Origin: Pocillopora damicornis
Taxonomy: Eukaryota
DNA length: 64,000 nt
Reading direction: 5' to 3'
Assembly: GCF_003704095.1 (NCBI RefSeq)
Contig: NW_020846333.1
Coordinates: 1 to 64,000, forward strand
A program made the translations under genes and the position numbers. Position 1 is the first letter of the stretch; the number at the start of each line of letters is the position of its first letter. Positions 5,521 to 63,058 of this stretch are shown in pieces. The notes beneath the pieces are model-generated. The model was given only the letters and a program-made list of their open reading frames with translations, did no database searches and had not been told where the DNA came from.

Positions 5521-6266
5521 ATGGAGTCGCTTTNNNNNNNNNNNNNNNNNNNNNNNNNNNNNNNNNNNNNNNNNNNNNNNNNNNNNNNNNNNNNNNNNNN
5601 NNNNNNNNNNNNNNNNNNNNNNNNNNNNNNNNNNNNNNNNNNNNNNNNNNNNNNNNNNNNNNNNNNNNNNNNNNNNNNNNNNNNNNNNNNNNNNNNNNNN
5701 NNNNNNNNNNNNNNNNNNNNNNNNNNNNNNNNNNNNNNNNNNNNNNNNNNNNNNNNNNNNNNNNNNNNNNNNNNNNNNNNNNNNNNNNNNNNNNNNNNNN
5801 NNNNNNNNNNNNNNNNNNNNNNNNNNNNNNNNNNNNNNNNNNNNNNNNNNNNNNNNNNNNNNNNNNNNNNNNNNNNNNNNNNNNNNNNNNNNNNNNNNNN
5901 NNNNNNNNNNNNNNNNNNNNNNNNNNNNNNNNNNNNNNNNNNNNNNNNNAAGTTTGCATTTGTCAAATTTGCATAGTCACGGATCATCAAAACCACAAAG
6001 TTGATCTTCTCGACAAAGCAGCACACGAGGAGAAGCATAACATCATGTCGGGTGCTAAATTGATCAAGAAAATGGAAAGCGAGCTCCGGAATCTCATTAA
6101 GCAGTTTGAAGAAACCATTTCTGAGCTGGATAGCAATATGGCAACGGCTAAGCGAAGCGTCAGGAAAGCAGCTGAATAAGTGATCGCAGATATTCGAGAG
6201 CGCGAGCGAGAGGCGTTACAATCCCTCGAGGCAACACGCGTTTCGAGACTCCATAAAATTAACTCG
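5521..6266 (+). pseudogene. Class B TRIM-NHL copy with a premature stop; interrupted by gap 5534-5949 and truncated by gap 6267
   Basis: ATG GAG TCG CTT start as in other class B copies. B-box2 end and coiled coil follow the gap. In-frame TAA at 6177-6179 where paralogs have CAA/GAA. Confidence 0.8.
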
Positions 6267-6366
6267 NNNNNNNNNNNNNNNNNNNNNNNNNNNNNNNNNN
6301 NNNNNNNNNNNNNNNNNNNNNNNNNNNNNNNNNNNNNNNNNNNNNNNNNNNNNNNNNNNNNNNNNN

Positions 6367-7276
6367 CCAGGTTTTCCGCAAACTGAGCTGCTTGGTTCAT
6401 TTGTTTCACCAAGAATTCCACTTCCTGTTTAGCCGAGTTAATTTTAGAGAGTCTCGACACGTGTGTTACCTCGATGGATTCCAATGCCTCTCGCTCGCGC
6501 TCTCGAATATCTGCGATCATTTGTTCAGCTGATTGCTTGACACGTAGCTTAGCCGTTACCATATTGCTTTTTAGCTTAGAAATGGTTTCTTCAAACTGCT
6601 TTATGACTTCCCGGAGCTCACTTTCCATTTCCTTGATCAATTTAGCGTCCGACATGATGTTATCCTTTTCCTCGTGTGCTGCTTTGTCGAGCCCAACAAC
6701 TTTATGGTTTTCATGATCCGTGACTATGCAAATTTGACAAATGCAAACTTGACACTGCGAGCAAAAAAACCGTGCAATTTCTCTTTCGTGGAACTGTTGA
6801 GAACAAAACGGTTGTCGCCTTAACAATGCTTCGTAATCTTCTGTTTTGAAGTCTTGAAGTGGCGTGACTTTGTGTCCTTGAAAAGATTTCTTGAGCACTT
6901 CATGTGCGTTAAAACAACCAGGGCACATGAATCGTCCGCAATCGAAGCAGTAGTACATCTGAGAGTTGTTTGCACCGCATTGACAACAATTAATGCTACT
7001 TGCATCATCAGTCTGTCGAACAGCGAGAAGACTCAACAAATTGTTATGAAAAAAGCTGTTGGGCAAACGGTCGAAGCGATTTCCTTCTGATAAATCGATC
7101 GCTGCCTGACACTCGGGACATCGGAATTTTCCCTTTTTCTGGCTCACTCTTGCATGTTTCGCCAAACATTCACAGCAAAACGTGTGAAGACATGATATAG
7201 TTTTAGGCTCGGTGTAGGTATCGAGGCAAATCGAACAAGTAAGTTGTTTCTTGAGATTTACCAAAAGCGATTCCAT
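6367..7276 (-). CDS. Class B TRIM-NHL, N-terminal part (RING, B-box1, B-box2, coiled coil); 3' part lost in gap
   Basis: C3HC4 RING CSIC..CLHTFCCEC..CPEC; B-box1 CCQC..YCFDCGRFMCPGCFNAH; B-box2 CSQQFH..FCSQCQVCICQICIVTDH. Open to the gap. Confidence 0.9.
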
Positions 7277-7346
7277 CAGTATTGACAATAATTAAAAACG
7301 ATATATGTAAGCGACGTTCAAAATTGAATGATCAGTTTATTTCAGA

Positions 7347-8254: not shown

Positions 8255-9000
8255 ATGGATCCTCTCTTTAAGAATCTCAAGAAACAAGTTACTTGCTCAA
8301 TTTGTCTCGATACCTACACCGAACCCAAAACCATATCATGTCTTCACACATTTTGTTGCGAGTGTTTAGAGAGACATGCAAGAGTGAGCCAGAGACAAGG
8401 GAAATTCAGATGCCCCGAGTGCCAGGCAGAAATCAATTTACCAGAAGGAAATCGGTTCGACCGTTTGCCTAACAGCTTTTTCCACAAAAGTCTGTTAGGT
8501 GTCATTGAGGCGGAAGATCGCCAAGCCATTCCGAGGCAGCAACAGGGGACTTGCTCGCAGCATACGGAAGAAAGAGTACGTTATTACTGCTCCTCGTGTG
8601 AGGTGTATGTTTGTCCGATTTGCGTCACCGAAGACCACAGAGGCCATGCGTTTGACGTGCTTGAAAAAGCAGTGCAAGAGGGAAAGAAAAGCATAATGTC
8701 TGCTGTCGAGACCATCAAGGAAAAGGCAAACTTGTTTGGAGCAGAGCTAAGAAAATTAGAGGAAACTTCAGAGGATGTGGAAATGATTATCGCGATCGCT
8801 AAACAAGAAGTGTCGGAGGCAGCTGAACACGTGATCACAAAGACGCGACAACAAGAAAAACAGCTTTTAGAGTCCTTAGAAATGACGCGTAGGAAGAGAA
8901 TAGAGCAAATCAACTCGGCTAAACAAGAACTGGAATCTCTAATAAAAATAATAAACCGAGCAGCTGAATTTGCGGAGAATCTGGTGCAGAGAAGATCAGA
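8255..9000 (+). CDS. Class A TRIM-NHL, N-terminal part (RING, single B-box, coiled coil); truncated by gap
   Basis: RING plus CSQH..YYCSSCEVYVCPICVTEDH B-box; open to gap 9001. Confidence 0.9.
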
Positions 9001-11858: not shown

Positions 11859-12184
11859 TCAAGGTGCTTTTGTTATCTCCACAGGCTTAGATAAATGAGT
11901 GATACTTTTGCCGGTGAAGCGACCATCTAAAGAAAACTGCTGAACCTGGTTATTGCCAAAGTCACATACTAAAAGAATATTGGAGCTGTCTACAAGCAAA
12001 TCATACAGCGTTTGAAATTTTCCATCTTGATACCCTTCTTTGCCAAACTTGTATAAGAATGTTCCTGACTGATCAAAAGCTTTTATGCGGTGGTGGCCTG
12101 CATCAGTTACGAGAAACATGTTTTTGTAAGGAATGCAGCAGGTTGGCCATAAAAGTTTCTCTGGGCCTTTGTCTCCAAATGTGA
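11859..12184 (-). pseudogene. TRIM-NHL 3' fragment (NHL blades 4-6) with a deletion removing the normal C-terminus; 5' part in gap
   Basis: Ends ...ITKAP* instead of ...ITKAPDGRILVTSxxxKKVYILK*. About 100 bp is deleted through the normal stop into the 3' flank. Confidence 0.65.
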
Positions 12185-13047: not shown

Positions 13048-14025
13048 CTATTTCAAAATGTACACTTTTTTCTGATCATGGCTAGTAACAAGAATACGCC
13101 CGTCTGGTGCTTTTGTTATCGCCATAGGCTTAGATAATCGAGTGATACTTTTGCCGGTGAAGCGACCGTCTAAAGAAAACTTTTGAACTCGGTAATTGTC
13201 AGTGTCACATACTAGAAGATTATTGGAGCTGTCTACAAGTAAACCACGCGGCAAGTTAAATTGTCCATCTTGATTCCCTTTTTTGCCAAACTTGTATAAG
13301 AATGTTCCTGACTGATCAAAAGCTTTTATGCAGTGCTTTTCTTTATCAGATACGAGAAACATGTTTTTGTGAAGAACGCAGCAGCTTGGACCATGAAGTT
13401 TCTCTGGACCTTTGTCTCCAAATGTGAAAATAGACTCTCCTTCCTTTGACATTACCTGTATCCTATTATTTTCTCTCTCGGTTACAATAATACGCTCTAC
13501 ATCATCCACAGTAACGTCTACTGGATTACCTAACTCTCCTTTCTCTTTACCGAATTTTCCAAAACTTTTCACCACAGTTCCTGTCTGAATATTAAGTCGT
13601 TGTATTCTGCAATTCCCTAGGTCTGCAATTAGGACTTCGTTGTCATTAAAAAACGAAATGCCACGAGGGTACTGAAACTGTCCTGTATTGCTACCCTCGC
13701 CTCCAGTTTTTCTCAAACAGTTGCCATCTTTATCAAAAACATAAACACAGTGGCCAAAGTTATCTGTCACAACTATCTGGCCTTCTGTATTCACAGCAAT
13801 GCCATATAACCGTTCAAACTTGTCCCCTGGAAAGAGCTTTAACTTCAACTCACTGATCACAAAAAGTTCACGTTCTTTAACCTGCACAGTCATGGGACAG
13901 GTCGGTAGTTTATCGCCATTAATCTTCACTTCAATGTTGTAGGCCCCTGGTACTTTGGGAGTAAACTTCAACCTAAGATTGCCATTTTCTTTCTCTTCAA
14001 CAATCACGTCTGTAATATCCTTGAC
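13048..14025 (-). CDS. TRIM-NHL C-terminal half (class B-type filamin end plus six NHL repeats); 5' part in gap
   Basis: IVEEKENGNLRLKFTPKVPGAY filamin motif; six NHL blades ending KKVYILK*. Confidence 0.9.
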   Translation of the reverse strand, partial: VKDITDVIVEEKENGNLRLKFTPKVPGAYNIEVKINGDKLPTCPMTVQVKERELFVISELKLKLFPGDKFERLYGIAVNTEGQIVVTDNFGHCVYVFDKDGNCLRKTGGEGSNTGQFQYPRGISFFNDNEVLIADLGNCRIQRLNIQTGTVVKSFGKFGKEKGELGNPVDVTVDDVERIIVTERENNRIQVMSKEGESIFTFGDKGPEKLHGPSCCVLHKNMFLVSDKEKHCIKAFDQSGTFLYKFGKKGNQDGQFNLPRGLLVDSSNNLLVCDTDNYRVQKFSLDGRFTGKSITRLSKPMAITKAPDGRILVTSHDQKKVYILK

Positions 14026-14125: not shown

Positions 14126-15367
14126 TTCCGATGCCCCGAGTGTCAGGCAGAAATCGATTTACCACAAGGAAATTGCTTCGACCGCTTGCCTAGCAGCTTT
14201 TTCCACAAAAGTCTGTTAGGTGTCCTTCTTGAAGCGGAAGATTGCGAAGCCATTGCGAGTCAACAACTGGACACTTGCTCGCAACATACGGAAGAAAGAG
14301 TACGATATTACTGCTCCTCGTGTGAAGCGTGTATTTGTCCGATTTGCGTCACCGAAGACCACCGAGGCCATGCGTTTGAAATGCTTGAAAAAGCAATGCA
14401 AGAGGATAAGAAAAACATTATGTCGACTGTCGAGACCATCAAGGAAAAGGTAAACTTGTTTCGAGCACAGTTAGAAAAAACATCAGAGGATGTGGAAATG
14501 ATTATTGCAATCGCTAAACAGGAAGTGTCGGAGGCAACTGAAGACGTGATCACAAAGACGAGACAGCAAGAAAAACAGCTCTTAGAGTCCTTAGAATAGA
14601 ACGAATGCCACACGTAAAAAAAGAATAGAACGAATCAACTCGGCTAAACAAGAACTGGAATCTCTAATAAAAAAAATTAACCAAGCAGCTGAATTTGCGG
14701 AGAGTCTGGTGCAACGAAGATCAGCTGTGGATATCATACAGAACAAAAACAAATTGAGGCAGAAACTTGAAGAGCTTCGTAGAGTTGAAGTTCCAAAACA
14801 TCGCCAGGCTACATTTGTCAAATTTACTGCCGCATCGCAACACAACTTTAAACTGGGTTCTATTCAGGTCTCCGAGAAGCCGGCAATCGCAGCTAAATCA
14901 ACTCTAGAAGGACTGGATCAAACTTTTCAAGTTGGTGTAGAAGCAAAGTTTACGTTGTGCCCACGGACATCTGGCGAGAGATGAGTGACCACGCTGATCT
15001 CAAAGATGAAGTCGAATTGCTAATAACATCCGCCAAAGATGTGACGAATGTGACTCTTGATGAGAAATATGACGGTAACGTTAGGCTGAAGTTTATTCCC
15101 AAAGTACCTGGGGCCTACAGCACTGAGGTGAAGATTAATGGCGATAAACTACCAACCTGTCCTATCACTGTGCAGGTTAAAGAACGTGAACTTGTCGTGG
15201 TCGGTGAGTTGAAGTTAAAGTTCTTTCCAGGGCACACGCTTGAACGGTTATATGGAGTTGTTGTGAATACAGAAGGCCAGATAGTTGTGACAGATAACCT
15301 TGGCAACTGTGTATATGTTTTTGATAAAGATGGCAACTGTATGAGAAAAATCGGAAGCAAGCGTAGC
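14126..15367 (+). pseudogene. Class A TRIM-NHL pseudogene (frameshifted), flanked by gaps
   Basis: Small insertion with stop at ~14597 (ttagaatagaacgaat) and a 1-bp deletion at ~14975 split the homology over three frames. Confidence 0.85.
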
Positions 15368-15467: not shown

Positions 15468-17167
15468 TACAAGTAAACCACGCGGCGGGTTAAATTGTCC
15501 ATCTTGACTCCCTTCTTTGCCGAACTTGTATAAGAATGTTCCTGACTGATCAAAAGCTTTTATGCAGTGGTTGCCCAAATCAGATACGAGAAACATGTTT
15601 TTGTAAAGAGTGCAGCAGCTTGGCCATAAAAGTTTTTCTGGGCCTTTGTCTCCAAATGTGAAAATAGATTCCCCCTCCTTTGACATCACCTGTATCCTAT
15701 GATTGCCCCACTCGGTTACAACAATGCGTTCGTCATCATCCACAGTAACGTCTATTGGCCTATCAAACTCTCCTTTTTCTCTGCCTTCTTTTCCAAAACT
15801 TTTCACAACAGTTCCTGTCTGAATATTAAGTTGTTGTATTCTGCAATTGCCTGAGTCTGCAATTAGGACTTCGTCGTCATTTAAAAACGAAATGCTATCA
15901 GGAGAAAGAAATTGTCCTGTATTGCTACCCTCGCTTCCAATTGTTCTCAAATGGTTGCCATCTTTATCAAAGACATATAAACAGTCGCCAAAGTCATCTG
16001 TCACAACTATCTGGCCTTCTGTATTCACAGCAATTCCACATAACCATCTAAGCGTGTCCCTAGGAAAGAGCTTTAGCTCCAACTCACCGACCACAACAAG
16101 TTCACGTTCTTTTACCTGCACAATCATTGGACAGGTCGGTAGTTTATCGCCATTAATCTTCACTTCAATGCTGTAGGCTCCAGGTACTTTGGGAGTAAAC
16201 TTTAGGCTAACATTTCCGTCGTACTCCTCATCAACAGTCACGTTTGTCACATCTTCGGCGGGTTTTAGTAGCAATTCGACTTGATCTTTGAGATCATCGT
16301 GGTCACTCATCTCCCCTCCAGATGTCCGTGGGCACAACGTAAACTTTGCTTCTACACCAGCCTGAAAAGTTTGATATAGTCCTTCTAAAGTTGATTTAGC
16401 TGCGATTGGCGGCTTCTCGGAGACTTGAATAGAACCCAGTTTAAAGTTGTGTTGCGATGCGGCGGTAAATTTGACAAATGTAGCCTGGCGATGTTTTGGA
16501 ACTTCAACTCCATGAAACTCTTCAAGTTTCTCCCTCAATTTGTTTTTGTTCTGTAGGATGTCTGCAGCTGATCTTCTCTGCACCAGGTTTTCCGCAAAGT
16601 CGGCTGCTTCATTCATTTGTTTTACTAGAGATTCCAGTTCTTGTTTAGCCGAGTTGATTCGCTTTATTCTCCTCCTACGCGTCATTTCTAAAGACTCTAA
16701 GAGCTGTTTTTCTTGTTGTCGCGTCTTTGTGATTATACGTTCCGTTGCCTCCGACACTTCTTGTTTAGCGATTGCAATAATCATTTCCACATCCTCTGAT
16801 GTTTTCTCTAATTTTCTTAACTCTGCTCGAAACAAGTCTGCCTTTTCCTTGATGGTCTCGACGGTCGACATGATGTTTTTCTTCTCCTCTTGCACTGCTT
16901 TTTCAAGCAAGTCAAACGCATGGCCTCGGTGGTTTTCGGTGACGCAAACTGGACAAACACTCGCCTCACACGTAGAGCAGTAATATCGCAGTCTTTCTTC
17001 CGTATGTTGCAAGCAAGTCTCCTGTTGTTGCCTCGAAATGGCCTGGCAATCTTCCGCTTCAAGGACACCTAACAGACTTTTGTGAAAAAAGCTGTTGGGC
17101 AAAAGGTCGAAGCGATTTCCCTCTGGTAAATCGATTTCTGCCTGACACTCGGGGCATCGGAATTTCC
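15468..17167 (-). CDS. Class A TRIM-NHL, both ends lost in gaps; visible part uninterrupted
   Basis: Open frame from KFRCPEC through B-box, coiled coil and filamin to NHL blade 5 (GQFNPPRGLLV). Confidence 0.9.
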
Positions 17168-20618: not shown

Positions 20619-22646
20619 ATGAATCCTCTCGTAAAGAACCTCACGAAACAACTTACTTGCTCGATTTGTCTCGATACCTATACCGAGCCCAAAACTATAT
20701 CATGTCTTCACACATTTTGCTGTGAGTGTTTAGAGAGACATGCAAGAGTGAGCCAGAGACAAGGGAAATTCAGATGCCCCGAGTGTCAGGCAGAAATCGA
20801 TTTACCACAAGGAAATCGCTTTGACCGTTTGCCTAACAGCTTTTTTCACAAAAGTCTGTTAGGTGTCCTTGAAGCGGAAGATCGTGAAGCCATTCCGAGG
20901 GAACAACAGGACACTTGCTCGCAACATACGGAAGAAAGAGTACGATATTACTGCTCCTCGTGTAAGGTGTGTATTTGTCCGATTTGCGTCACCGAAGACC
21001 ACCGAGGCCATGCGTTTGATGTGCTTGAAAAAGCAGTGCAAGAGGAGAAGAAAAACATCGTGTCGACTGTCCAGACCATCAAGGAAAAGGCAAACTTGTT
21101 TCGAGCAGAGTTAAGAAAATTAGAGGAAACATCAGAGGATGTGGAAATGATTATCGCGATCGCAAAACAAGAAGTGTCGGAGGCAACTGAACACGTGATC
21201 ACAAAGACGCGACAACAAGAAAAACAGCTTTTAGAGTCCTTAGAAGTGATTCGTAGGAAAAGACTAGAGCGAGTTAACTCGGCTAAACAAGAACTGGAAT
21301 CTCTGGTAAAAATGCTCCAAGGAGCTGAATTTGCGGAGGATCTGGTGCAAAGAGGATCAACTGTGGATATCATACAAAACAAAAACAAATTGAGACAGAA
21401 ACTTGAAGAGCTTCGTGGAGTTGAAGTTCCAAAACATCGCCAGGCTACATTTGTCAAATTTACCGCCGCATCGCAACACAACTTTAAACTGGGCTCTATT
21501 CAAGTCTCTGAGAAGCCGGTTATCGCAGCTAAATCAACTTTAGAAGGATTAGATCAAACTTTTCAGGTCGGTGAAGAAGGAAAGTTTACTTTGTGCCCAC
21601 GGACATCCGAAGGAGAGATGAGTGACTACGCTGACCTCAAAGATCAAGTCGAATTGCTGATAACACCTGCCAAAGATGTTACAAACGTGACTGTTAATGA
21701 GAAATATGACGGAAATTTTGGGCTAGAATTTACTCCCAAAGTACCTGGGGCCTACAGCATTGAAGTAAAGATTAATGGAGATAAACTACCGACCTGTCCC
21801 ACGATTGTGCAGGTTAAAGAACGTGAACTTGTTGTGGTTGGTGAGTTGAAGTTAAAGCTCTTTCCAGGGGACAAACTTGAACGTTTATATGGAGTTGCTG
21901 TGAATACAGATGGCCAGATAGTTGTGACAGATAACCGTGGTAAATGTGTATATGTTTTTGATAAAGATGGCAACTGTATGAGAAAAATTGGAAGCAAGCG
22001 TAGCTATACAGGACAGTTTCAGTTTCCCAATGGCATTTCGTTTTTAAATAACAACGAAGTCCTTATTGCAGACTCGAGCAATTGCAGAATACAACGACTT
22101 AATATTCAGACAGAAGCTATAGTGGCGAGTCTAGGAAGAAAAGGTAGAGAAAAAGGAGAGTTTGGCATGCCTATAAACGTTACTGTGGATGATAAAGAAC
22201 GCATTGTTGTAACTGAGTGGGACAATCATAGGATACAGGTGATGTCAAAGGAGGGAGAGTCTATTTTCACATTCGGCGACGACGGCCCAGAGAAACTCCA
22301 TTATCCAAGTTGCTGCCTTCCATACAAAAACGTGTTTCTCGTGACTGATGCAGGCAACCACTGCATAAAAGCTTTTGATCAGTCAGGAATATTCCTATAC
22401 AAGTTTGGCAAAAGAGGGTATCAAGATGGACAATTTAAAACGCCGAATGGTTTGCTTGTAGACAGCTCTAATAATCTTCTAGTATGTGACTCTGGCAATA
22501 ATCGAGTTCAACAGTTTTCTTTAGACGGCCGCTTCACCGGCAAAAGTATCACTCGTTTATCAGACCCCACTTCGATAACAAAAGCACCAGACGGAGGTAT
22601 TCTTGTTACTAGCTTTGATGAGAAAAAAGTGTACATTTTGAAATAG
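20619..22646 (+). CDS. Intact class A TRIM-NHL E3 ubiquitin ligase (RING-Bbox-CC-filamin-6xNHL), 675 aa, single coding exon
   Basis: Complete ATG-to-TAG ORF with all domain motifs recognisable. Confidence 0.95.
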   Translation: MNPLVKNLTKQLTCSICLDTYTEPKTISCLHTFCCECLERHARVSQRQGKFRCPECQAEIDLPQGNRFDRLPNSFFHKSLLGVLEAEDREAIPREQQDTCSQHTEERVRYYCSSCKVCICPICVTEDHRGHAFDVLEKAVQEEKKNIVSTVQTIKEKANLFRAELRKLEETSEDVEMIIAIAKQEVSEATEHVITKTRQQEKQLLESLEVIRRKRLERVNSAKQELESLVKMLQGAEFAEDLVQRGSTVDIIQNKNKLRQKLEELRGVEVPKHRQATFVKFTAASQHNFKLGSIQVSEKPVIAAKSTLEGLDQTFQVGEEGKFTLCPRTSEGEMSDYADLKDQVELLITPAKDVTNVTVNEKYDGNFGLEFTPKVPGAYSIEVKINGDKLPTCPTIVQVKERELVVVGELKLKLFPGDKLERLYGVAVNTDGQIVVTDNRGKCVYVFDKDGNCMRKIGSKRSYTGQFQFPNGISFLNNNEVLIADSSNCRIQRLNIQTEAIVASLGRKGREKGEFGMPINVTVDDKERIVVTEWDNHRIQVMSKEGESIFTFGDDGPEKLHYPSCCLPYKNVFLVTDAGNHCIKAFDQSGIFLYKFGKRGYQDGQFKTPNGLLVDSSNNLLVCDSGNNRVQQFSLDGRFTGKSITRLSDPTSITKAPDGGILVTSFDEKKVYILK

Positions 22647-46327: not shown

Positions 46328-46700
46328 ATGGAGCCGCTGAAGAAACAAGTTACTTGTTCGATTTGCTTCGATACCTACACAGAGCCCAAAACTATATCAT
46401 GTCTTCACACGTTTTGCTGTGAGTGTTTGGAGAAACATGTAAGAGTGAGCCAGAAAAAGGGAAAATTTCGATGCCCCGAGTGTCAGGCAGTGATCGATTT
46501 ACCAGATGGAAATCGCTTCGACCGTTTGCCTAACAGTTTTTTCCATAAGAGGTCATTGAATCGCGCTGTTCGACAGGGTGGTGCGGCGAGTATAGCTTTA
46601 CTTGTTATCAATGCAGCGTAACCAATCCCCAGATGTAATACTGCTTCGACTGCGAACGATTCATGGGCCCTGATTGTTTCAACGCACATGAAGTGCTCAT
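46328..46700 (+). pseudogene. Class B TRIM 5' fragment (RING plus broken B-box1)
   Basis: MEPLKKQVTCSICFDTY...; frameshift and stops at ~46590-46640; joins intergenic sequence at ~46700 without a gap. Confidence 0.85.
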
Positions 46701-47806: not shown

Positions 47807-50017
47807 ATGAATTCTCTCCCTAAGAATCTCAAGAAACAAGTTACTTGTTCGATTTGCTTCGATACCTACGCAGAGCCCAAAACTATATCATGTCTTCACA
47901 CGTTTTGCTGTGAGTGTTTGGAGAAACATGTAAGAGTGAGCCAGAAAAAGGGAAAATTTCGATGCCCCGAGTGTCAGGCAGTGATCGATTTACCAGATGG
48001 AAATCGCTTCGACCGTTTGCCTACCAGCTTTTTCCATAAGAGTTTATTGAATCTTCTGGCTGTTCGAAAGGGTGGTGCGGCAAGTAGCTTTACCTGTTTT
48101 CAATGCAGTGCAACCAACCCCCAGATGTACTACTGCTTCGACTGCGAACGATTCATGTGCCCTGATTGTTTCAACGCACATGAATTGCTCAAGAAGTCTT
48201 TTCAAGGACACAAAGTCACACCAGTTCAAGACTTCAAAACAGAAGATTACGAAGCATTGTTAAAGAGACAACCGTTTTGTTCTCGGCAGTTCCACGAGAG
48301 AGAAATTACACGGTTCTTTTGCTCGCAGTGTCAAGTTTGCATTTGTCAAATTTGCATAGTCACGGATCATCAAAACCACAAAGTTGTTGTGCTCGACAAA
48401 ATAGCACACGAGGAAAAGGATAACATGATGTCGGGCGCTAAATTGATCAAGAAAATGGAAAACAAGCTCCGTGAAGTCATTAAGCAGTTTAAAGAAACCA
48501 TTTCGAAGCTGGAAAGCAATATGGAAACGGCTAAGCGAAGCGTCAAGCAAGCAGCTGAGGAAATGATCGCAGATATTCGAGAGCGCGAGCGAGAGGCGTT
48601 GGAATCCCTCGAGGAAACACGCGCGTCGAGACTCCATAAAATTAACTCGGCTAAACAGGAAGTGGAATCCTTAGTAAAACAAATGAACCAAGCAGCTCAG
48701 TTTGCGGAAAATCTAGTGCAGGGAACCTCAAGCTCGGATATTATGCAGAACAAAGAAACTATAAGGACCAAATTTGAAGAGCTTCTGCGAGTTGAAGTTC
48801 CAAAACATCAGCAGACGACATTCATTAAATTCACTGCAGCATCTCACAAGGACTTGAAACTGGGTTTCATTGAAGTCACTGAAGACGCAGCAAAGGCAGC
48901 TAAATCAACTTTAGACGGACTGGATCAAACTTTCCAGGCTGGAGTAGAAGCAGAGTTTACGTTATATCCAAAGAAATCTGGAGATGAGATGAGTAACCAG
49001 GCTGATCTTAAAAGTCGAGTTGAATTGCTGGTTAAACCCGTCAAGGATGTTACAGACGTGATTGTCGAAGAGAAAGAGGACGGCAATCTTGCATTGAAGT
49101 TTACTCCCAAAGTACCTGGCGCCTATAGCATTGAGGTGAAGATTAATGGCGATAAACTATCGACCCGTCCCATGACTGTGCAGGTAAAAGAACGTGAAAT
49201 TGTTGTGGTCGGTGAGTTGAAGTTAAAGCTCTTTAAAGGGAACACTCTTGAACGGTTATTTGGAGTTGCTGTGAATACAGAAGGCCAGATAGTTGTAACA
49301 GATAACTTTGGCCACTGTGTTTATGTCTTTGACAACAATGGCAACTGTTTGAGAAAAAGTAGAGGCGAGGGTAGCAATACAGGACAATTTCAGTACCCTA
49401 ATGGCATTTCGTTTTTTAATGACAACGAAGTCCTGATTGCAGACTCAGGAAATTGCAGAATACAACGACTTAATATTCAGACAGGAACCGTGGTCAAAAG
49501 TTTTGGAAAAAGAGGCAGGGGAAAAGGAGAGTTTGGCAGGCCATTAGACGTTACTGTGGATGATAAAGAACGCATTGTTGTAACCGAGTGGGACAATAAT
49601 AGGATACAGGTGATGTCAAAGGAGGGGGAATCTATTTTCACATTTGGAGACAAAGGCCCAGAGAAACTTTTATGGCCAACCTGCTGCATTCTTTACCAAA
49701 ACAGGTTTCTCGTATCCGATACAGGCAACCACTGCATAAAAGCTTTTGATCAGTCAGGAACATTGTTATACAAATTTGGCAAAAAAGGGAATCAAGATGG
49801 ACAATTTAACTGGCCGTATGGTTTGCTTGTAGACAGCTCCGATAATCTTCTAGTATGTGACTCTGGCAACAACCGAGTTCAGCAGTTTTCTTTAGACGGT
49901 CGCTTCACCGGCAAAAGCATCATTCGTTTATCTAATGTTACAGCGATGTTAACAGCACCAGACAGGCGTATTCTTGTTACTAGCCATGATGAGAAAAAGG
50001 TGTACATTTTAAAATAG
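47807..50017 (+). CDS. Intact class B TRIM-NHL (RING-B1-B2-CC-filamin-6xNHL), 736 aa
   Basis: Complete ORF with two B-boxes. Confidence 0.95.
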   Translation: MNSLPKNLKKQVTCSICFDTYAEPKTISCLHTFCCECLEKHVRVSQKKGKFRCPECQAVIDLPDGNRFDRLPTSFFHKSLLNLLAVRKGGAASSFTCFQCSATNPQMYYCFDCERFMCPDCFNAHELLKKSFQGHKVTPVQDFKTEDYEALLKRQPFCSRQFHEREITRFFCSQCQVCICQICIVTDHQNHKVVVLDKIAHEEKDNMMSGAKLIKKMENKLREVIKQFKETISKLESNMETAKRSVKQAAEEMIADIREREREALESLEETRASRLHKINSAKQEVESLVKQMNQAAQFAENLVQGTSSSDIMQNKETIRTKFEELLRVEVPKHQQTTFIKFTAASHKDLKLGFIEVTEDAAKAAKSTLDGLDQTFQAGVEAEFTLYPKKSGDEMSNQADLKSRVELLVKPVKDVTDVIVEEKEDGNLALKFTPKVPGAYSIEVKINGDKLSTRPMTVQVKEREIVVVGELKLKLFKGNTLERLFGVAVNTEGQIVVTDNFGHCVYVFDNNGNCLRKSRGEGSNTGQFQYPNGISFFNDNEVLIADSGNCRIQRLNIQTGTVVKSFGKRGRGKGEFGRPLDVTVDDKERIVVTEWDNNRIQVMSKEGESIFTFGDKGPEKLLWPTCCILYQNRFLVSDTGNHCIKAFDQSGTLLYKFGKKGNQDGQFNWPYGLLVDSSDNLLVCDSGNNRVQQFSLDGRFTGKSIIRLSNVTAMLTAPDRRILVTSHDEKKVYILK

Positions 50018-52477: not shown

Positions 52478-54554
52478 ATGAATCCTCTCTTGAAGAGTCT
52501 CAAGAAACAAGTTACTTGCTCGATTTGTCTCGATACCTACACCGAGCCTAAAACTATATCATGTCTTCATACATTTTGCTGTAGGTGTTTAGAGAGACGT
52601 GCAAGAGTGAGCCAGAGACAATGGAAATTCAGATGCCCCGAGTGTCAGGCAGAAATCGATTTACCGCAAGGAAATCGCTTCGACCGTTTGCCCAAAAGCT
52701 TTTTTTCACAAAAGTCTGTTAGGTGTCCTTGAAGCGGAAGATCGCCAAGCCATACCGAGGCAACAACAGGAAACTTGCTCGCAGCATACGGAAGAAAGAG
52801 TACGATATTACTGCTCTTCGTGTGAGGCGTGTATTTGTCCAATTTGCGTCACCGAAGACCACCGAGGCCATGCGTTTGATGTGCTTGAAAAAGCAGTGCA
52901 AGGGGAGAAGAAAAACATCGTGTCGACTGTCCAGACCATCAAGGAAAAGGCAAACTTGTTTCGAGCAGAGTTAAGAAAATTAGAGAAAACATCAGAGGAT
53001 GTGGAAATGATTATCGCGATCGCTAAACAAGAAGTGTAGGAGGCAACTGAACACGTGATCACAAAGACGCGACAGCAAGAAAAACAGCTTTTTAGAGTCT
53101 CTAGAAATGACGCGTAGGAGGAGAATGGAACGAATCAACTCGGCTAAACAAGAACTGAAATCTCTAATAAAAAAAAATAACTAAGCAGCTGAAGTTGCGG
53201 AGAATCTGGTGCAGCGAAGATCAGCTGCGGATATCATACAGAACAAACACAAATTGAGGCAGAAACTTGAAGAGCTTCATGGAGTTGAACTTCCAAAACA
53301 TCACCGGGCTACATTTGTCAAATTTGCCGCTGCATCTCAACACAACTTTAAACTGGGTTTTGTTCAAGTCACCGAGAGGCCGGCAATCGCAGCTAAATCA
53401 ACTCTGGAAGGACTGGAGGAAACTTTTCAGGCTGGTGTAGAAGCAAAGTTTGCATTGTGCCCACGGACATCTGGAGGAGAGATAAGTGACTTCGCTGATC
53501 GCGAAGATCAAGTCGAATTACTAATAACACCCGCCAAAGATGTGACAAACGTGACTGTTAATGAGAAAGATGTGACAAACGTGACTGTTAATGAGAAATA
53601 TGACGGAAATGTTAGGCTGAAGTTTACACCCAAAGTACCTGGGGCCCACAGCGTTGAAGTGAGGATTGATGGCGATAAACTACCGACCTGTCCCATGACT
53701 GTGCAGGTAAAAGAACGTGAACTTGTTGTGGTCGGCGAGTTGAAGTTAAAGCTCTTTCAAGGGGACATGATTGAACGGTTAAGTGAAATAACTGTAAATA
53801 CAGAAGGCCAGATAGTTGTGACAGATACATTTGGCCACTATGTCTATGTCTTTGACAAAATGGCAACCGTTTGAGAAAAACTGGAGGCGAGGGTAGCAAT
53901 ACAGGACAATTTCATCCGTCTGAACGCATTTCGTTTTTAAATGACAACGAAGTCCTAATTGCAGATTGCGGAAATAGCAGAAGGGGGGAAGGGGAATACA
54001 ACGACTTTATTTTCAGACAGGAAAGGAACTGTAGTGAAAAGTTTTGGAAAATTCGGTAAAGAAAACGGAGAGCTAAATAATCCAGTAGGCGTTACTGTGG
54101 ATGATAAAGAACGCATTGTTGTGAGTGGGGAAATAATAGGATTCAGGTGATGTCGAAGGAAGGATAATCTATTTTTACATTTGGAGACAATAGCCGAGAG
54201 AAACTCCAATATCCAAACTGCTGCATTCTTAACAAAAACATGTTTCTCGTATCTGATGGAGGCAACCACTGCATCAAAGCTTTTGATAAGTCAGGAACAT
54301 TACTATACAAGTTTGGCAAAGAAGGGAATCAAGATGGGCAATTTACAACGCCGTATGATTTGCTTGCAGACAGCTCCAATAATCTCTTAGTATGTGATTC
54401 TGGGAATAACGGAGTTTAGCAGTTTTCTTTAGACGGTCGCTTCACCGGCAAAATTATCACTTGTTTATCTAAGCCTAAAGTGATAACAAAAACACCAGAC
54501 GGGCGTATTTTTGTTACTAGCCATAATGACAAAAAAGTGTATATTTTGAAATAG
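52478..54554 (+). pseudogene. Full-length class A TRIM-NHL pseudogene
   Basis: Poly-T frameshift at ~52700, TAG at 53037-53039, further indels and stops, and a 30-bp tandem duplication at 53536-53595. Confidence 0.92.
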
Positions 54555-56795: not shown

Positions 56796-56915
56796 ATGGA
56801 TCCTCTCTTTAAGAATGTCAAGCAGCAAGTTACTTGCTCGATTTGTCTCGATACTTACACCCAACCTAAAACTATATCATGTCTTCACACATTTTGCTGT
56901 GAGTGTTTAGAGAGA
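56796..56915 (+). CDS. Class A TRIM-NHL 5' end (RING start); truncated by gap
   Basis: MDPLFKNVKQQVTCSICLDTYTQPKTISCLHTFCCECLER; preceded by GAS TTCTTAGAA (56695-56703) and GAAAGTGAA. Confidence 0.8.
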
Positions 56916-57680: not shown

Positions 57681-57978
57681 AACGTCTGTTGTATGTGACA
57701 ATGACCAATGTTTCGTTACCCATTCTAGTGCAATTGGACTAAATTTCCTTTTATGATAGATCACTCGAAGATTGATTTGACCACTCACCATAAATATACG
57801 AAAAAAAGCCTCGTTTGTTGCATTGTCCAAATCACATTTATTGAAATTCTTGTCTTTAATTGCTTTTATTTGAAGCAACTTGAATTACCGAAAGTTTGGT
57901 TGTCTAAAATCGAGGTTTCATCTCTGTCAACATGGTCTTTTTATCATTACAAAAAGGTCAGCTAAGGCCTGGAATACG

Positions 57979-58035
57979 ATTGGCCAGAGGAAGTCAGCTG
58001 TCATGGACTTAATGCTGTTTTCTCGGAAACTGAAA
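57979..58035 (+). promoter_or_regulatory. Class A promoter: ATTGG, GAGGAAGT, GAS TTCTCGGAA (58020-58028), ISRE-like GAAACTGAAA (58026-58035)
   Basis: Direct motif match about 90-140 bp upstream of ATG 58120. Confidence 0.65.
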
Positions 58036-58119
58036 TAATATCTCAGATTTCGTATGAGTGTTTTGACAGGGCTCGTCGCTTGATTACGCATCAGTCAACT
58101 ACAATCTTAGGTGATCGTT

Positions 58120-60144
58120 ATGAATCCTCTCTTTAAGAATCTCAAGAAACAATTTACTTGCTCGATTTGTCTCAATGCTTACACCGAGCCCAAAACTATA
58201 TCATGCCTTCACACATTTTGCTGTAAGTGTTTAGAGACGCATGCAAGAGTGAGCCAGAGACAAGGGAAATTCCGATGCCCCGAGTGTCATGCAGAAATCG
58301 ATTTACCGCAAGGAAATCGCTTCGACCTTTTGCCTAACAGTATTTTTCACAAAAGTCTGTTAGGTGTCCTTGAAGCGGAAGATCGCCAAGCCACTCCAAG
58401 GCAACAACAAGAGACTTGCTCGCAACATACGGAAGAAAGACTACGATATTACTGCTCCTCGTGTGAGGCGTGTATTTGTCCAATTTGCGTCACTGAAGAC
58501 CACCGAGGCCATGCGTTTGACGTGCTTGAAAAAGCAGTGCAAGAGGAGAAAAAAAACATCCTGTCGACTGTCCAGACCATCAAGGAAAAGGCAAACTTGT
58601 TTCGAGCAGAGTTAAGTACACTAGAGAAAACATCAGAGGATGTGGAATTGTTTATCGCAATCGCTAAACAAGAAGTGTCGAAGGCAACTGAACACGTGAT
58701 CACAATGACGCGACAACAAGAAAAACAGCTCTTAGAATCCTTAGAAATGACGCGTAGGAGGAGAATAGAGCGAATCAACTCGGCTAAACAAGAACTTAAA
58801 TCTCTGGTAAAACAGATGAACCAAGCAGCTGAGTTTGCGGAGAATCTGGTGCAGAGAAGATCAGCTGCGGATATCATTCAGAACAAAAACGAGTTGAAAC
58901 TTGGAGATCTTCGTGGAGTCGAAGTTCCAAAACATCGCCAGGATATATTTGTCAAATTTACCGCTGCATCGCAACACAACTTTAAACTGGGTTCTATTCA
59001 AGTGTCTGAGAAGCCGGCAATCGCAGCTAAATCAACTCTGGAAGGACTGGGTCAAACTTTCCAGGTTGGTGTACAAGCAAAGTTGACGTTGTGCCCACGG
59101 ACATCTGGAGGAGAGATGAGTAACTGCGCTGATCTCAAAGATCAAGTGGAAATGCTGATAAAACCCGCCAAAGATGTGACAGACGTGATTGTTGATGAGG
59201 AATATGACGGAAAGGTTAGGCTGAAGTTTACTCCCAAAGTACGTGGGGCCTGCAACATTGAAGTGAGGATTAATGGCGATAAACTACCGACTTGTCCCAT
59301 GACTGTGTGGGTAAAAGAACGTGAACTCGTTGTGGCAGGTGAGTTGAAGTTAAAACTCTTTCCAGAGGACAAGCTTGAACGGTTATATGGAATTGCTGTG
59401 AATACAGAAGACCAGTTAGTTGTAACAGATAACTTAGGCCACTGTGTTTATGTTTTTGACAAAACTGGCAACCGTTTGAGAAAAACTGGAGGCGAGGGTA
59501 GCCATACAGGCCAATTAAAGTTCCCTAAGAGCATTTCGTTTTTAAATGACAACGAAGTCCTAATTGCAGACTCAAGCAATTGCAGAATACAACGACTTAA
59601 TATTCAGACAGGAACTGCAGTGAAAAGCTTTGGAAAAAAAGGCAGAGAAAAAGGAGAATTTGATAGGCCAATAGACGTTACTGTGGATGATGAAGAGCGC
59701 ATTGTTGTAACTGAGTGGGGCAATGGTAGGATACAGGTGATGTCAAAGGATGGTGAGTCTATTTTTACATTTGGAGACAGAGGCCCAGAGAAACTCTGTA
59801 GGCCAACCTGCTGCATTCCTTACAAAAACATGTTTCTCGTAACTGACGCAGGGAACCACTGTATAAAAGCTTTTCATCAGTCAGGAACATTCTTATACAA
59901 GTTTGGCAAAGAAGGGAATCAAGATGGACAATTTAACCTGCCGCGTGGTTTGCTTGTAGACAGCTCCAATAATCTTCTAGTATGTGACTTTGGCAATAAC
60001 CGAGTTCAACAGTTTGCTTTAGACGGTCGCTTCACCGGCAAAAGTATCACTCATTTATCTTATCCTGTGGCGATAACAAAAGCACAAGACGGGCTTATTC
60101 TTGTTACTAGCAATGATGAGAAAAAAGTGTATATTTTGAAATAG
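58120..60144 (+). CDS. Intact class A TRIM-NHL, 674 aa
   Basis: Complete ORF. True ATG placed at 58120 by homology; the ORF track starts at an upstream GTG. Confidence 0.95.
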   Translation: MNPLFKNLKKQFTCSICLNAYTEPKTISCLHTFCCKCLETHARVSQRQGKFRCPECHAEIDLPQGNRFDLLPNSIFHKSLLGVLEAEDRQATPRQQQETCSQHTEERLRYYCSSCEACICPICVTEDHRGHAFDVLEKAVQEEKKNILSTVQTIKEKANLFRAELSTLEKTSEDVELFIAIAKQEVSKATEHVITMTRQQEKQLLESLEMTRRRRIERINSAKQELKSLVKQMNQAAEFAENLVQRRSAADIIQNKNELKLGDLRGVEVPKHRQDIFVKFTAASQHNFKLGSIQVSEKPAIAAKSTLEGLGQTFQVGVQAKLTLCPRTSGGEMSNCADLKDQVEMLIKPAKDVTDVIVDEEYDGKVRLKFTPKVRGACNIEVRINGDKLPTCPMTVWVKERELVVAGELKLKLFPEDKLERLYGIAVNTEDQLVVTDNLGHCVYVFDKTGNRLRKTGGEGSHTGQLKFPKSISFLNDNEVLIADSSNCRIQRLNIQTGTAVKSFGKKGREKGEFDRPIDVTVDDEERIVVTEWGNGRIQVMSKDGESIFTFGDRGPEKLCRPTCCIPYKNMFLVTDAGNHCIKAFHQSGTFLYKFGKEGNQDGQFNLPRGLLVDSSNNLLVCDFGNNRVQQFALDGRFTGKSITHLSYPVAITKAQDGLILVTSNDEKKVYILK

Positions 60145-61511
60145 ACTCTTTCAAAAGTGAACTTCGCTTCTTGAGCCGTTCCTTTAACCTGTGTTTTGTT
60201 TTATGTTTTACGCTGTTTTATCACTTGTCTGGAAGAACTCTTAGCGATAATATCCACAAGACTTACAATTACTCTTAGATACGAATATTTCTTGACTCCA
60301 AGTAATTAGCCTTGGTCTTTCAAGTTCGCCAGTTTCAAGCCGTTTTAATCTCCCCCATCCTTCCTCACTTGGCCATCCATGTTTCTTCTCGGTTAATTAT
60401 TATCCTCTTTAATTGCTTTTTCTCCGATCTAAAGGCTTTGTTTTTTTTATTTAAGGTCAAGGTATTTCTCCGCATCATCAGTGGTGGTTTGAATAATCTA
60501 GACCACGAAATTTAAAATGTCTAGTTCAGCAGAACAACTACATGCTGTATAGAAACATTTAACAAATTTGACTTTTTTTATAGCCTGAGAATATATAGGT
60601 GGAAAACGTTAAGACCGAGTGCTGCTTTTTGCAGTCATTGATTGGTCAACTTTTTTTAAAAATGGGCATCTACTGGGTAATTATGTCATAATTAGAGGTG
60701 GTTACTGACTTTCCAACTAAGCTTAAGTGTTAGCTCTAAACTATTTAAACTATTTATTTTAAGAAATAGTCTCAGGTTTTCTTCTATGTAATAGGGCGAG
60801 AAAAATTAGAAATGCATTAAATAAATAAGACTTAAAAGTTAATTCCAGTTTGTTGTAAAGGATGATCATAAAATATGTTCCAGTTTTAAATATAAATAAC
60901 ATTTTTCAATAAAATTATTTGAAAAACTTTATTGGGAAACATCATTTCAAACTTACAAAATCATCTATATTTGCTCCCCTAGAAAATTAAAAAAAAAAAT
61001 TAAGTCTATGTCATTTATACTTTAAATATAATTGGCAAGCAGGAATGTAGTGTTTTTTCCATCTCTTTGGATGTTTTGAGATGCCAAAGCATTAAGTCAC
61101 CTTTAGCTCTTTCTTTAAGCAGGTAAAATTTTATATTGGCAAGTTAAAAACTAACTAAAAAAAAAAGAAAAAAAAAAAGAAAGAAACCAACAATAACGAG
61201 CAGAAACAAAAGAAAAAATGTGCCTAAATGTATTATTCATAGACATTTAGTTAGAGGGACTACATCCTTTAGTACCTTAGTGTCACTAGCTTATAATTTC
61301 TTCTCACAGTATCACTGTTACATCAAACAATAAGGTCATGAGAATAAAGGAAATGATCATCAGCCAAAGAAACTCTTGATTGTTAAGCAAATTCTCCTTG
61401 TTAGTAAGTTANNNNNNNNNNNNNNNNNNNNNNNNNNNNNNNNNNNNNNNNNNNNNNNNNNNNNNNNNNNNNNNNNNNNNNNNNNNNNNNNNNNNNNNNN
61501 NNNNNNNNNNN

Positions 61512-63058
61512 ACTTGTTTCGAGCAGAGTTAAGAAAATTAGAGAAAACATCAGAGGATGTGGAAAGGATCATCGCGATCGCTAAACAAGAAGTGTCGGAG
61601 GCAACTAAACACGTGATCACAAAGACGCGACAGCAAGAAAAGAAACTTTTAGAGTCCTTAGAAATGACACGTAGGAAGAGACTAGAGCGAGTTAACTCAG
61701 CTAAACAAGAACGTGAATCTCTGGTAAAACAAATAGAGCAAGCAGTTGAATTTGCGGAGAACCTGGTGCAGAAATCAGCTGCAAATATCATACAGAACAA
61801 AAACAAATTAAGGCAGAAACTTGAAGAGCTTCGTGGAGTTGAAGTTCCAAAACATCGCCAGGCTATATTTGTCAAATTTACTGCCGCATCGCAACACAAC
61901 TTTAAACTGGGATCTATTCAGGTCTTCGAGAAGCCGGCAATCGTAGCCAAATCAACCATCGAAGGACTGAATCAAACTTTTCAGGCTAATGTACAGGCAA
62001 AGTTAACGTTGTGCCCACGGACATCTGGAGGAGAGATGAGTGACTACCCTGAAGATCAAGTCGAATTCCTCGTAACACCCGCCAAAGATGTGACAAACGT
62101 GACTGTTGATGAGGAATATGACGGAAATGTTAGGCTGAACTTTACTCCCAAAGTACCTGGGGCCTACAACATTGAAGTGAAGATTAATGGCGATAAACTA
62201 CCGCCCTGTCCCATGACTGTGCAGGTAAAAGAACGTGAACTTGTCGTGGTCGGTGAGTTGAAGTTAAAGCTCTTTCCGGGGGACAAGCTTAGAGGGTTAT
62301 TTGAAATTGCTGTGAATACAGAAGGCCAGATAGTTGTGACAGATAACCTTGGCAACTGTGTTTATGTCTTTGACAAAAATGGCAACTGTTTGAGAAAAAT
62401 TGGAGGCAGGGGTAGTAACAAAGGATTATTTCAGCACCCCGTTGGCATTTCGTTTTTAAATGACAACGAGGTCCTTATTTCAGACTTCACAAATTGCAAA
62501 ATACTACAACTAAATATTCAGACAGGAACTGTGGTGAAAAGTTTTGGAAAATTCGGTAAAGAAAAAGGAGAGCTAACTAATCCAGTATACGTTACTGTGG
62601 ATGATGAAGAGCGCATTGTTGTAACCGAGAGTAGCAATCATAGGATACAGGTGATGTCAAAGGAAGGAAGATCTATTTTTACATTTGGAGACAAAGGCCC
62701 AGAGAAACTTGCACGGCCAACCTGCTGCATTTTTCACAAAAATATGTTTCTCGTATCTGATACAAGCAACCACTGCATAAAAGCTTTTGATCTGTCAGGA
62801 ACATTCTTATACAAGTTTGGCGAACAAGGGGATCAACATGGACAATTTCGAAGGCCGCGTGGTTTGCTTGTAGACAGCTCCAATAATCTTCTAGTATGTG
62901 ACACTGAAAATAAACGAGTTCAGCAGTTTTCTTTAGACGGTCGCTTCACCGGCAAATGTATCACTCCTTTACCTAAGCCTATGGCAATAACAAAAGCACC
63001 AGACGGGCGTATTCTTGTTACTAGCCATGATCAGAAAAAAGTGTACATTTTGAAATAG
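61512..63058 (+). CDS. Class A TRIM-NHL, coiled coil to C-terminus; 5' part in gap
   Basis: Open frame to KKVYILK*. Confidence 0.9.

Follow-up and report, generated by a model that had tools for sequence, protein, structure and literature searches.

A tandem array of TRIM-NHL genes in the coral Pocillopora damicornis with positive selection on the predicted recognition face of the propeller

TRIM-NHL proteins are normally low-copy developmental regulators, and model animals have four or five such genes. Birth-and-death arrays of TRIM genes are known from vertebrates, in which the TRIM5 cluster and the fish finTRIMs are antiviral and use B30.2/SPRY as the recognition domain. Large lineage-specific families of E3 components are also represented by the F-box and MATH-BTB adaptors of nematodes and plants, which display a positively selected substrate domain next to a conserved docking part and are read as targeting foreign proteins; these differ from the coral TRIMs described here in being adaptor subunits of cullin ligases rather than single-chain RING ligases, and in their unrelated fold. 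Here we analyze a stretch of 64,000 nucleotides (nt) from the genome of the reef-building coral Pocillopora damicornis (positions 1 to 64,000 of contig NW_020846333.1; hereafter, the window), which contains a series of complete and partial TRIM-NHL genes. We consider it probable that these genes form a young tandem array of the Pocillopora lineage, composed of single-exon class VII TRIM genes and providing a paralog repertoire of recognition-coupled E3 ligases. The descriptive part of this reading, namely the architecture, the array, the expression, and the site-specific selection on one face, carries high confidence.

The window genes share with LIN-41/TRIM71, TRIM2, TRIM3, TRIM32/Thin, Brat, and Mei-P26 the domain order RING, B-box, putative coiled coil, Filamin, and six-bladed NHL. 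Pfam matches to RING (PF00097, PF13445), B-box (PF00643), Filamin (PF00630), and NHL (PF01436) extend across the long open reading frames (ORFs) in single frames. RING is matched in copies A, B, C, D, J, and K (Table 1), and all of its zinc-binding Cys and His residues are kept in the alignment of the seven copies that have an N-terminus (7/7). Two N-terminal subtypes coexist: copies C, J, and K, of a type with 736 amino acids (aa), contain two PF00643 stretches, and copies A, B, D, and E, of a 675-aa type, contain one. The coiled coil yielded only sub-threshold matches, in copy C (PML_CC, 18.4 bits; TRIM_CC, 17.5 bits). The proteins begin directly with the RING, with no signal peptide or membrane anchor, and end in the NHL domain; no SPRY match, which would indicate B30.2/PRY-SPRY, was obtained with Pfam in any copy. 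The genes were described as intronless in the first-pass annotation of the window, and indeed the coding sequences are single open frames without an intron, and RNA contigs are collinear with the genome. An AlphaFold2 model of copy C (aa 360–736, built from a 69-sequence alignment; mean predicted local distance difference test score 92.6) contains 23 propeller strands and, in Foldseek, retrieves first the filamin-NHL structure of zebrafish Lin41 (6fpt; E 2e-27), followed by Thin, TRIM71, TRIM2, TRIM3, and Brat. The NHL sequence is about equally close to Thin (E 4e-43), TRIM71, TRIM3, and TRIM2, whereas the RING is nearest to those of TRIM3, TRIM2, and TRIM56. Judged by these comparisons, the family appears to belong to TRIM class VII (TRIM-NHL) without being orthologous to any single vertebrate or fly gene. 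The coral family further departs from its described relatives in number and organization: in the 234,350,878-base assembly that includes the window (4,393 contigs), NHL matches at E ≤ 1e-20 number at least 100, on more than 40 contigs, many of them full-length single open frames, and the genes have single-exon coding sequences, occur in tandem arrays, and show no one-to-one orthology to the known genes.

Within the window, tblastn searches with the four complete ORFs as queries yielded 20 pieces of this one family between positions 5952 and 63058. The earlier figure of about 19 copies or fragments is thereby borne out, provided that it is taken to number pieces. Four pieces are intact ORFs and six are true pseudogenes, broken inside continuous sequence; the remaining nine or so are open frames that terminate exactly at a run of N and are therefore assembly truncations rather than demonstrated pseudogenes. 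Accordingly, intact genes and pseudogenes are mixed in the array, as had been proposed, but about nine of the supposed fragments are frames cut by gaps. The window contains 17 runs of N, of which 13 adjoin TRIM coding sequence. Among these 13 gap-flanking cases, no in-frame continuation of TRIM coding sequence across a gap was found: most flanks have the opposite orientation, overlapping protein coordinates, or non-TRIM sequence on the far side. The sole compatible pair, 27384–28499(-) and 29182–29319(-), is separated by a 682-N gap, in which approximately 564 nt would have to be hidden. As no coding piece is continuous over the gaps, the copy number and the division into genes and pseudogenes are uncertain from the scaffold.

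This state of the assembly raises the question of whether the array is an artefact or neutral junk, with haplotigs and collapsed repeats inflating the count and loop variability reflecting relaxed constraint. The density of gaps next to TRIM coding sequence fits such an explanation, as do the six true pseudogenes and the report by the authors of the published Dovetail/HiRise assembly of P. damicornis that repetitive and heterozygous content is missing from it (PMC6208414). However, nucleotide identity between the pieces reaches at most 93% (86–90% for most pairs), and differences of 7–14% are far beyond allelic divergence, for which reason haplotigs were rejected. Furthermore, positions 45731–56916 are matched collinearly, at 96.7–98% identity, by L013, a 12.3-kb scaffold of independent origin from the Tara Pacific metagenomes, which repeats the gene order of these 11 kb: a RING fragment, copy C, a pseudogene, and the start of the next copy. 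In another coral, a 327-kb contig (ENA ERZ25067556) carries three TRIM-NHL paralogs spaced 30–90 kb apart; clustering is therefore not peculiar to the assembly of the window. Four intact copies and at least two transcribed loci likewise speak against an artefact.

The domains differ in their degree of conservation. The RING is the most conserved (82% pairwise amino acid identity, range 74–92%) and has the lowest ratio of nonsynonymous to synonymous substitution rates (dN/dS or omega, 0.22 by the method of Nei and Gojobori, NG86); with this level of identity it is less than the nearly invariant domain initially described, its zinc ligands notwithstanding. The corresponding values are 64% and 0.33 for B-box2, 66% and 0.37 for the coiled coil, 73% and 0.35 for Filamin, and 77% and 0.54 for NHL. 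We thus rejected the notion that NHL is the most divergent domain, since B-box2 and the coiled coil diverge more at the amino acid level, in part because the two N-terminal subtypes coexist. The hypervariability noted earlier for the NHL loops is real at approximately 30 positions but does not apply to the domain as a whole. At these positions, variability is strictly periodic from blade to blade: in the F-x-x-P-x-G loop it affects the two residues preceding the conserved Pro and the one following it, and in the D-x-x-N-x-R loop the residues that follow the conserved Asp, with up to six states per position among nine copies. According to the four-stranded antiparallel topology of the modelled blades, the variable sites are predicted to lie in the D-A and B-C loops, both on one face of the propeller. 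With loop classes fixed beforehand from the model, dN was 0.246 for the loops of this top face versus 0.083 elsewhere, and omega was 0.72 versus 0.39. To avoid circularity, we also defined 38 variable columns only on homologs from outside the coral genome, 30 of which fall in the B-C and D-A loops. In these columns, omega was 1.27 among the window copies, with a confidence interval (CI; 0.84–2.06) that includes 1, a point in favor of relaxed constraint, versus 0.34 for the remainder, and 1.09 versus 0.42 in a six-copy array on another contig (C629).

Site models were compared (M1a versus M2a) in a custom GY94/F3x4 likelihood implementation, with branch lengths estimated under M0 and subsequently scaled. 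For the NHL domain of the window copies, twice the log-likelihood difference (2dlnL) was 80.6 (p ~3e-18), with 12% of sites at omega 4.4, and the C629 array gave the same type of signal (2dlnL 34.8; 4.6% of sites at omega 7.5). By contrast, the controls were clean, with 2dlnL of 0.0 for coiled coil plus Filamin, 0.05 for Filamin alone, and 0.0 for B-box2 plus coiled coil; the RING gave 7.3, owing to a single site, residue 5. When the NHL domain was divided into thirds, each with its own tree, 2dlnL was 20.5, 26.6, and 30.0 for the first, middle, and last third, respectively. Posterior probabilities above 0.5 were assigned to 31 sites, and 22 of the 28 that could be classified on the model are in B-C/D-A loops (Fisher p = 1.8e-8). 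The NHL alignment is free of insertions and deletions, so that alignment error is of no concern. Collectively, the results support positive selection concentrated on the recognition face of the NHL domain, with the ligase module under purifying selection, and bear out the early impression of a variable propeller attached to a conserved E3 module. They also disagree with relaxed constraint as the source of loop variability: M2a is far better than the nearly neutral model, and in these very genes purifying selection acts on the NHL sites outside the loops and on all other domains. An explanation of the array as artefact or neutral junk is thus very improbable, and largely refuted already.

The position of the selected sites can be compared with a known ligand-binding surface. 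In zebrafish LIN41, an RNA stem-loop is held by Arg564, Arg581, Arg611, Lys628, and Asp629 (Kumari et al., PMC5908797), and the face that varies among the coral copies corresponds to the RNA-binding face of LIN-41 and Brat (PMC5908797). With an offset of 415, the LIN41 contacts become positions 149, 166, 196, 213, and 214 of the 6fpt chain, where our alignment reads R, R, R, K, and D, which verifies the numbering. These contacts sit immediately ahead of the conserved Pro or one and two residues beyond the conserved Asp, and the selected sites fall in the same within-blade register, for example, 530, 547/548, 595/596, 622/623, 639, and 669. Given this common register, selection acts on the homolog of a known ligand-binding surface, with the difference that ligand-contact positions are hypervariable rather than conserved in the coral. 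The selected sites are enriched in aromatic (19.6% versus 9.0%) and basic (18.9% versus 12.0%) residues, and their net charge ranges from -5 to +7 between copies. Assignment of the family as LIN-41/TRIM71 orthologs was considered and rejected, given the similar distances to Thin, TRIM71, TRIM3, and TRIM2, the hypervariability of the RNA-contact positions, and this range of charge.

Copies D and F are transcribed. Thirteen RNA runs, representing at least four studies, contain between 28 and 61% of the sampled words of positions 57100–63099. Four libraries, prepared as polyA, oligo-dT, or cDNA and each from a different study, yielded contigs of at least 99% identity that are collinear with copy D and cover copy F from the edge of the gap to the end of the stretch (Table 1); in two of the four runs, the D contigs have 0–3 mismatches per 190–470 nt, far nearer than any paralog. 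Coverage is zero at intergenic positions 57100–57299 in all four runs and near zero at 57700–58099 in three, and this contrast between genic and intergenic bins indicates transcripts rather than contaminating DNA. Among the RNA contigs, no intron-like joints within coding sequence were found; the joints listed connect corresponding homologous sites of D and F and represent chimeras of paralogs.

The window copies constitute their own clade (74–81% NHL identity), and the next arrays in the genome are more distant (C155, 63%; C629, 60%; C60, ~48%). The closest named proteins, from Oculina patagonica and Pocillopora meandrina, are approximately 67% identical, whereas ENA proteins reach 95%. A tree built on the Filamin-NHL region groups the window copies with ENA proteins only and places the O. 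patagonica and P. meandrina sequences in other clades. Four clean one-to-one pairs of a window copy and an ENA protein were recovered (C–P0001, H–P0010, G–P0013, and I–P0005), along with several further clade members without a window counterpart. This pattern indicates lineage-specific birth and death, and the tandem pieces, pseudogenes, and lineage-specific expansion vindicate the earlier designation as a birth-and-death TRIM array. Expansions of related genes have been noted in other corals: NHL occurs in 107 genes reported from the Acropora digitifera genome, in some of them together with Filamin and B-box (PMC3640398), orthogroups with NHL and B-box are expanded in merulinids (PMC11639872), and Ka/Ks >1 was obtained for single NHL or TRIM71-like orthogroups (PMC7783167, PMC9145168). 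Beyond such passing counts and Ka/Ks values for single orthogroups, the literature searched contained no account of coral tandem TRIM-NHL arrays, of selection on the propeller face, or of a conserved upstream element.

Some of this literature points to management of symbiosis, in which the repertoire would sense products of Symbiodiniaceae or resident microbes and tune their intracellular accommodation. A scleractinian-restricted NHL gene with Ka/Ks >1 in Acropora is reported to be upregulated only upon infection with the native symbiont (PMC7783167), and orthogroups with NHL and B-box are expanded in some coral families (PMC11639872). However, membership of that Acropora gene in the window clade would be an assumption, and proteins that are cytosolic, with neither signal peptide nor membrane anchor, are not what this role would favor; we regard it as improbable.

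Paralogs and orthologs behave differently at the selected sites. Between paralogs, 74% of selected sites differ, versus 16% elsewhere. Copy C has 37 residues that are different in the Tara counterpart, with an overall omega of 0.25, and none of these differences is at a selected site. Over the four one-to-one pairs, selected sites differ in 8 of 124 comparisons versus 34 of 972 elsewhere, about a twofold excess in an underpowered sample, with copy H alone contributing 6 of 31 and copies C and G 0 of 31 each. The paralogs are thus strongly diverged, whereas their identities are stable between individuals. Such stability would be expected of endogenous post-transcriptional or proteostatic regulators, if the duplicates had become subfunctionalized onto host mRNAs or proteins and the selection detected were that of one-off neofunctionalization. 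All of the nearest solved relatives are developmental or neuronal regulators whose targets are RNA or host proteins, developmental regulation was observed for a coral TRIM71-like gene (PMC12924552), and the window copies are expressed in ordinary polyA libraries for which no challenge is stated. Nevertheless, the same type of selection recurs in two separate arrays, and at least 100 loci with many pseudogenes and lineage-specific expansions are typical of conflict-driven families and unusual for housekeeping ones. Host-directed regulation is, in our estimate, an unlikely though not negligible explanation.

The upstream regions were also compared. Approximately 170 nt before the ATG are homologous among most copies, and an alignment of 14 such regions from three arrays (the window, C629, and C155) contains two peaks of conservation: GATTGGCCA, an inverted CCAAT box at about -150, and CTGTTTTCTCGGAA, which contains the consensus TTCN3GAA of a gamma-activated sequence (GAS). 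Of the 11 window 5′ regions, 9 contain the GAS-like TTCTCGGAA, located 58–107 nt ahead of the start codon; copy C is without the palindrome, and the upstream region of copy J is non-homologous. The palindrome is present in both regions examined in C629 and in two of three in C155, the third being broken by one base. In the genome, the exact 13-mer TGTTTTCTCGGAA has 39 occurrences, compared with 18 for a reversed control; at least 10 of these 39 are at TRIM loci, with six in the window, three just before TRIM start codons in C629, and one on C2644, a contig with TRIM-NHL pieces. In addition to that upstream of copy D (Table 1), the window has three proximal occurrences (8152, 20508, and 40388) and two in distal modules (19054 and 42259). 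The proposal of GAS/ISRE-like promoters therefore stands for the GAS-like half as a sequence element, conserved in three arrays, whereas the half resembling an interferon-stimulated response element (ISRE) is not conserved: the ISRE-like GAAACTGAAA, directly after the GAS-like block, and the ISRE GAAANNGAAA are present only in copies A, D, and L and the pseudogene at 52478 (4/11) and are absent in C629 and C155. From its conservation, the GAS-like element looks constrained. CGGAA is the core of ETS sites, and factors of the ETS type or others are equally possible as binders of the block. Four IRF-domain loci are present in the genome, and a six-frame Pfam search of the genome found neither STAT_bind nor STAT_alpha, domains that are probably split by introns, so that absence does not follow from this result; in Nematostella, the complement is one STAT and five IRFs (PMC8713801).

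The RNA coverage edge upstream of copy D is approximately 70–80 nt downstream of the GAS-like block, and the contigs cannot fix the start site. Most copies also have a conserved pyrimidine-rich, splice-acceptor-like ...TTTACTACAG (...ACAG) about 15 nt before the ATG (e.g., 20600–20604 and 47788–47792). Taken with an island of RNA coverage at 57300–57700, this acceptor-like YAG makes a non-coding first exon and an intron in the 5′ untranslated region possible. A second repeated upstream module, carrying TGTTTTCTCGGAA followed by TATATAG, is located at 19054–19066 and 42259–42271, with homologous segments at 7651–8091, 47264–47632, 51919–52314, and 55237–56213; it lies 1.3–1.5 kb before copies A and B and 160–550 nt before copies C and L and the pseudogene at 52478. 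The module could be an alternative distal promoter or a remnant of lost copies.

With respect to function, the TRIM5/6/22/34 cluster and the finTRIM and bloodthirsty-like TRIMs offer what is, in evolutionary mode rather than by descent, apparently the closest functional analogy. Like them, the coral array combines tandem birth and death, pseudogenes, and a conserved RING/B-box/coiled-coil module with positive selection on surface loops of the C-terminal recognition domain. The differences are that the recognition domain is an NHL propeller instead of the defining B30.2/PRY-SPRY, and that rapid change between orthologs, antiviral activity, and inducibility would be conjecture for the coral genes, for which the RNA contigs indicate steady-state presence. 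To our knowledge, moreover, the cnidarian host lacks interferon, unlike the hosts of TRIM5 and the finTRIMs. In our reading, the array is one of several in the genome and evolves by duplication, pseudogene decay, and gene conversion, with purifying selection keeping the ubiquitin-ligase module while about 30 B-C/D-A loop residues across all blades are driven apart between paralogs. In the mechanism we propose, each paralog would act as a cytosolic E3 ligase, dimeric through its coiled coil, and each NHL face would bind a different ligand, RNA or protein, resulting in a repertoire of specificities coupled to ubiquitination. Ligase activity, the class of ligand, and any defence role or inducibility are parts of the mechanism that we infer. 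As the selective agent, genetic conflict would be most likely, the opponents being viruses, transposons, microbes, symbionts, or other elements of a non-self or selfish kind. That the array has a role in conflict or defence of some kind is, by analogy, close to an even call, perhaps slightly favored. Its immune aspect draws on this analogy and on one conserved GAS-like motif, which make a defence role plausible. Survival of herpesvirus infection in oysters has been associated with loci that include TRIM genes (PMC9437489). A more specific proposal, according to which dozens of TRIM ligases read foreign RNA shapes or proteins through the LIN-41 RNA positions, share a STAT-type element, and form an NHL-based intracellular repertoire, that is, an innate layer of an early-branching animal that arose independently of the vertebrate B30.2 TRIMs, appears distinctly unlikely.

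It should be noted that several points weigh against our interpretation of the array as a repertoire of recognition-coupled ligases. The copy number is derived from a gapped short-read scaffold. The NG86 estimate at the independently defined columns is not by itself above 1. The spread of charge at the selected sites renders a common RNA-binding mode doubtful, leaving RNA, protein, or both possible, and the few changes between individuals in the one-to-one pairs neither demonstrate nor exclude a continuing arms race. Furthermore, recombination between paralogs can inflate site-model tests, and our implementation is a custom one with branch proportions fixed from M0. Signs of recombination are indeed present: dS is 0.24 in NHL versus 0.38–0.66 in the N-terminal domains, the NHL tree is star-like, and the comparison of copy C with its Tara counterpart gives a dS of 0.25 in Filamin (48884–49168) versus 0.035–0.04 in the flanking coiled coil and NHL, as if another paralog had donated a conversion tract. 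A recombination artefact is made less likely, though not excluded, by the clean controls and the positive tests for each third.

In this array, the evolutionary logic of diversifying TRIMs, known from the vertebrate B30.2 proteins, operates on the NHL propeller of a reef-building coral. Should the ligands be foreign, cnidarian immunity would extend to a large class of receptors not studied so far, and the loci would be candidates for explaining variation in coral disease or symbiosis. If it has no part in immunity, the array is still a natural experiment in which about 30 positions re-specify an NHL surface, informing on recognition of RNA or protein by this fold.

Table 1 TRIM-NHL pieces and conserved upstream elements in the window
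Feature	Positions	Strand	Evidence and remarks
Coiled-coil fragment (aa 177–281 of 736-aa type), open, gaps on both sides	5952..6266	+	tblastn, 81% identity
Copy K: RING, B-box1, B-box2, part of coiled coil (aa 1–303), open, gap-cut	6368..7276	-	Pfam, tblastn
Copy L: RING, B-box, part of coiled coil (aa 1–248, one-B-box type), open	8255..8998	+	Cut by gap 9001–9100; no TRIM sequence on right flank of gap
NHL fragment, true pseudogene, premature stop ~17 codons short of normal end	11862..12182	-	Upstream end at gap
Copy I: end of Filamin and full NHL (aa 412–736), open, gap-cut	13051..14025	-	tblastn
Copy M: true pseudogene, two frameshifts, gaps at both ends	14126..15367	+	tblastn, frames 2 -> 3 -> 2
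Copy E: open, aa 50–614 of 675-aa type, gaps at both ends	15468..17165	-	Pfam, tblastn
Copy A: intact, 675 aa; RING, one B-box, coiled coil, Filamin, NHL	20619..22646	+	ORF, Pfam
Copy H: Filamin and NHL (aa 365–736), open, cut by 682-N gap; may belong with 29182–29319	27384..28499	-	Pfam, gap comparison
B-box1 fragment (aa 131–176) between two gaps	29182..29319	-	tblastn
Copy G: end of coiled coil, Filamin, NHL (aa 279–736), open, gap-cut	29421..30800	+	Pfam, tblastn
Copy J: true pseudogene; 474-aa ORF (RING, two B-boxes, coiled coil, Filamin), deletion of aa 465–513 with frame change and stop, then NHL remnant	33878..35624	+	Pfam, tblastn
Old true pseudogene, ~50% identity, over several frames	40485..41431	+	tblastn
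Copy B: intact 675-aa gene	43597..45624	+	ORF, Pfam
RING and B-box1 fragment, true pseudogene with frameshift, end not at gap	46316..46704	+	Also in independent scaffold L013
Copy C: intact, 736 aa, two B-boxes; Filamin-NHL part modelled	47807..50017	+	95% identical counterpart in L013
Full-length true pseudogene, several frameshifts and stops	52478..54551	+	tblastn
First 40 codons of a copy	56796..56915	+	Cut by gap 56917–57016
Conserved GATTGGCCA (inverted CCAAT box), ~150 nt before ATG of D	57960..57972	+	Coordinate estimated from alignment
Conserved upstream block TGTTTTCTCGGAA (GAS-like TTCN3GAA), ~100 nt before ATG of D	58016..58028	+	Upstream alignment
Copy D: intact, 674 aa, ATG at 58120	58120..60144	+	PolyA RNA contigs, ~58099 to ~60700
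Copy F: open, aa 160 of 675-aa type to stop	61514..63058	+	Cut by gap 61412–61511; RNA contigs

Several of the individual pieces call for comment. The first coiled-coil fragment is inverted relative to copy K and overlaps it in protein coordinates; the two are therefore not continuous across the gap at 6267–6366. The open frame of copy J (33878–35290) is without NHL and has a TRIM45-like architecture, so that it could encode a decoy or short form instead of representing a dead gene. In the Filamin region of the pseudogene at 52478, a 30-nt tandem duplication (2.2 copies, 97% match) is found at 53536–53602; tandem repeats in the window as a whole number only three and are trivial. Ten of the 17 non-TRIM ORFs of at least 90 aa were scanned against Pfam, with no match in any of the ten, and neither tRNAs nor Rfam families were found in the window.

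In the contig of the other coral (ENA ERZ25067556), fragments of an ERAP1_C-type aminopeptidase precede each of the three TRIM-NHL paralogs, and the duplicated unit in that genome seems to be a larger segment that includes the aminopeptidase gene. A LINE-type (long interspersed nuclear element) reverse transcriptase ORF is located downstream of one of the TRIM-NHL copies on the same contig. In the window, a short interspersed repeat is present at 61300–61411 and also near 57495–57700, where the depth of RNA contigs is 2,500–7,200, versus 20–200 on the genes. A first look at the genome returned 1,377 candidates for this repeat, and 40 scored copies, on 40 contigs, have 83–94% identity. The repeat adjoins the gap at 61412–61511 and may explain the assembly break there.

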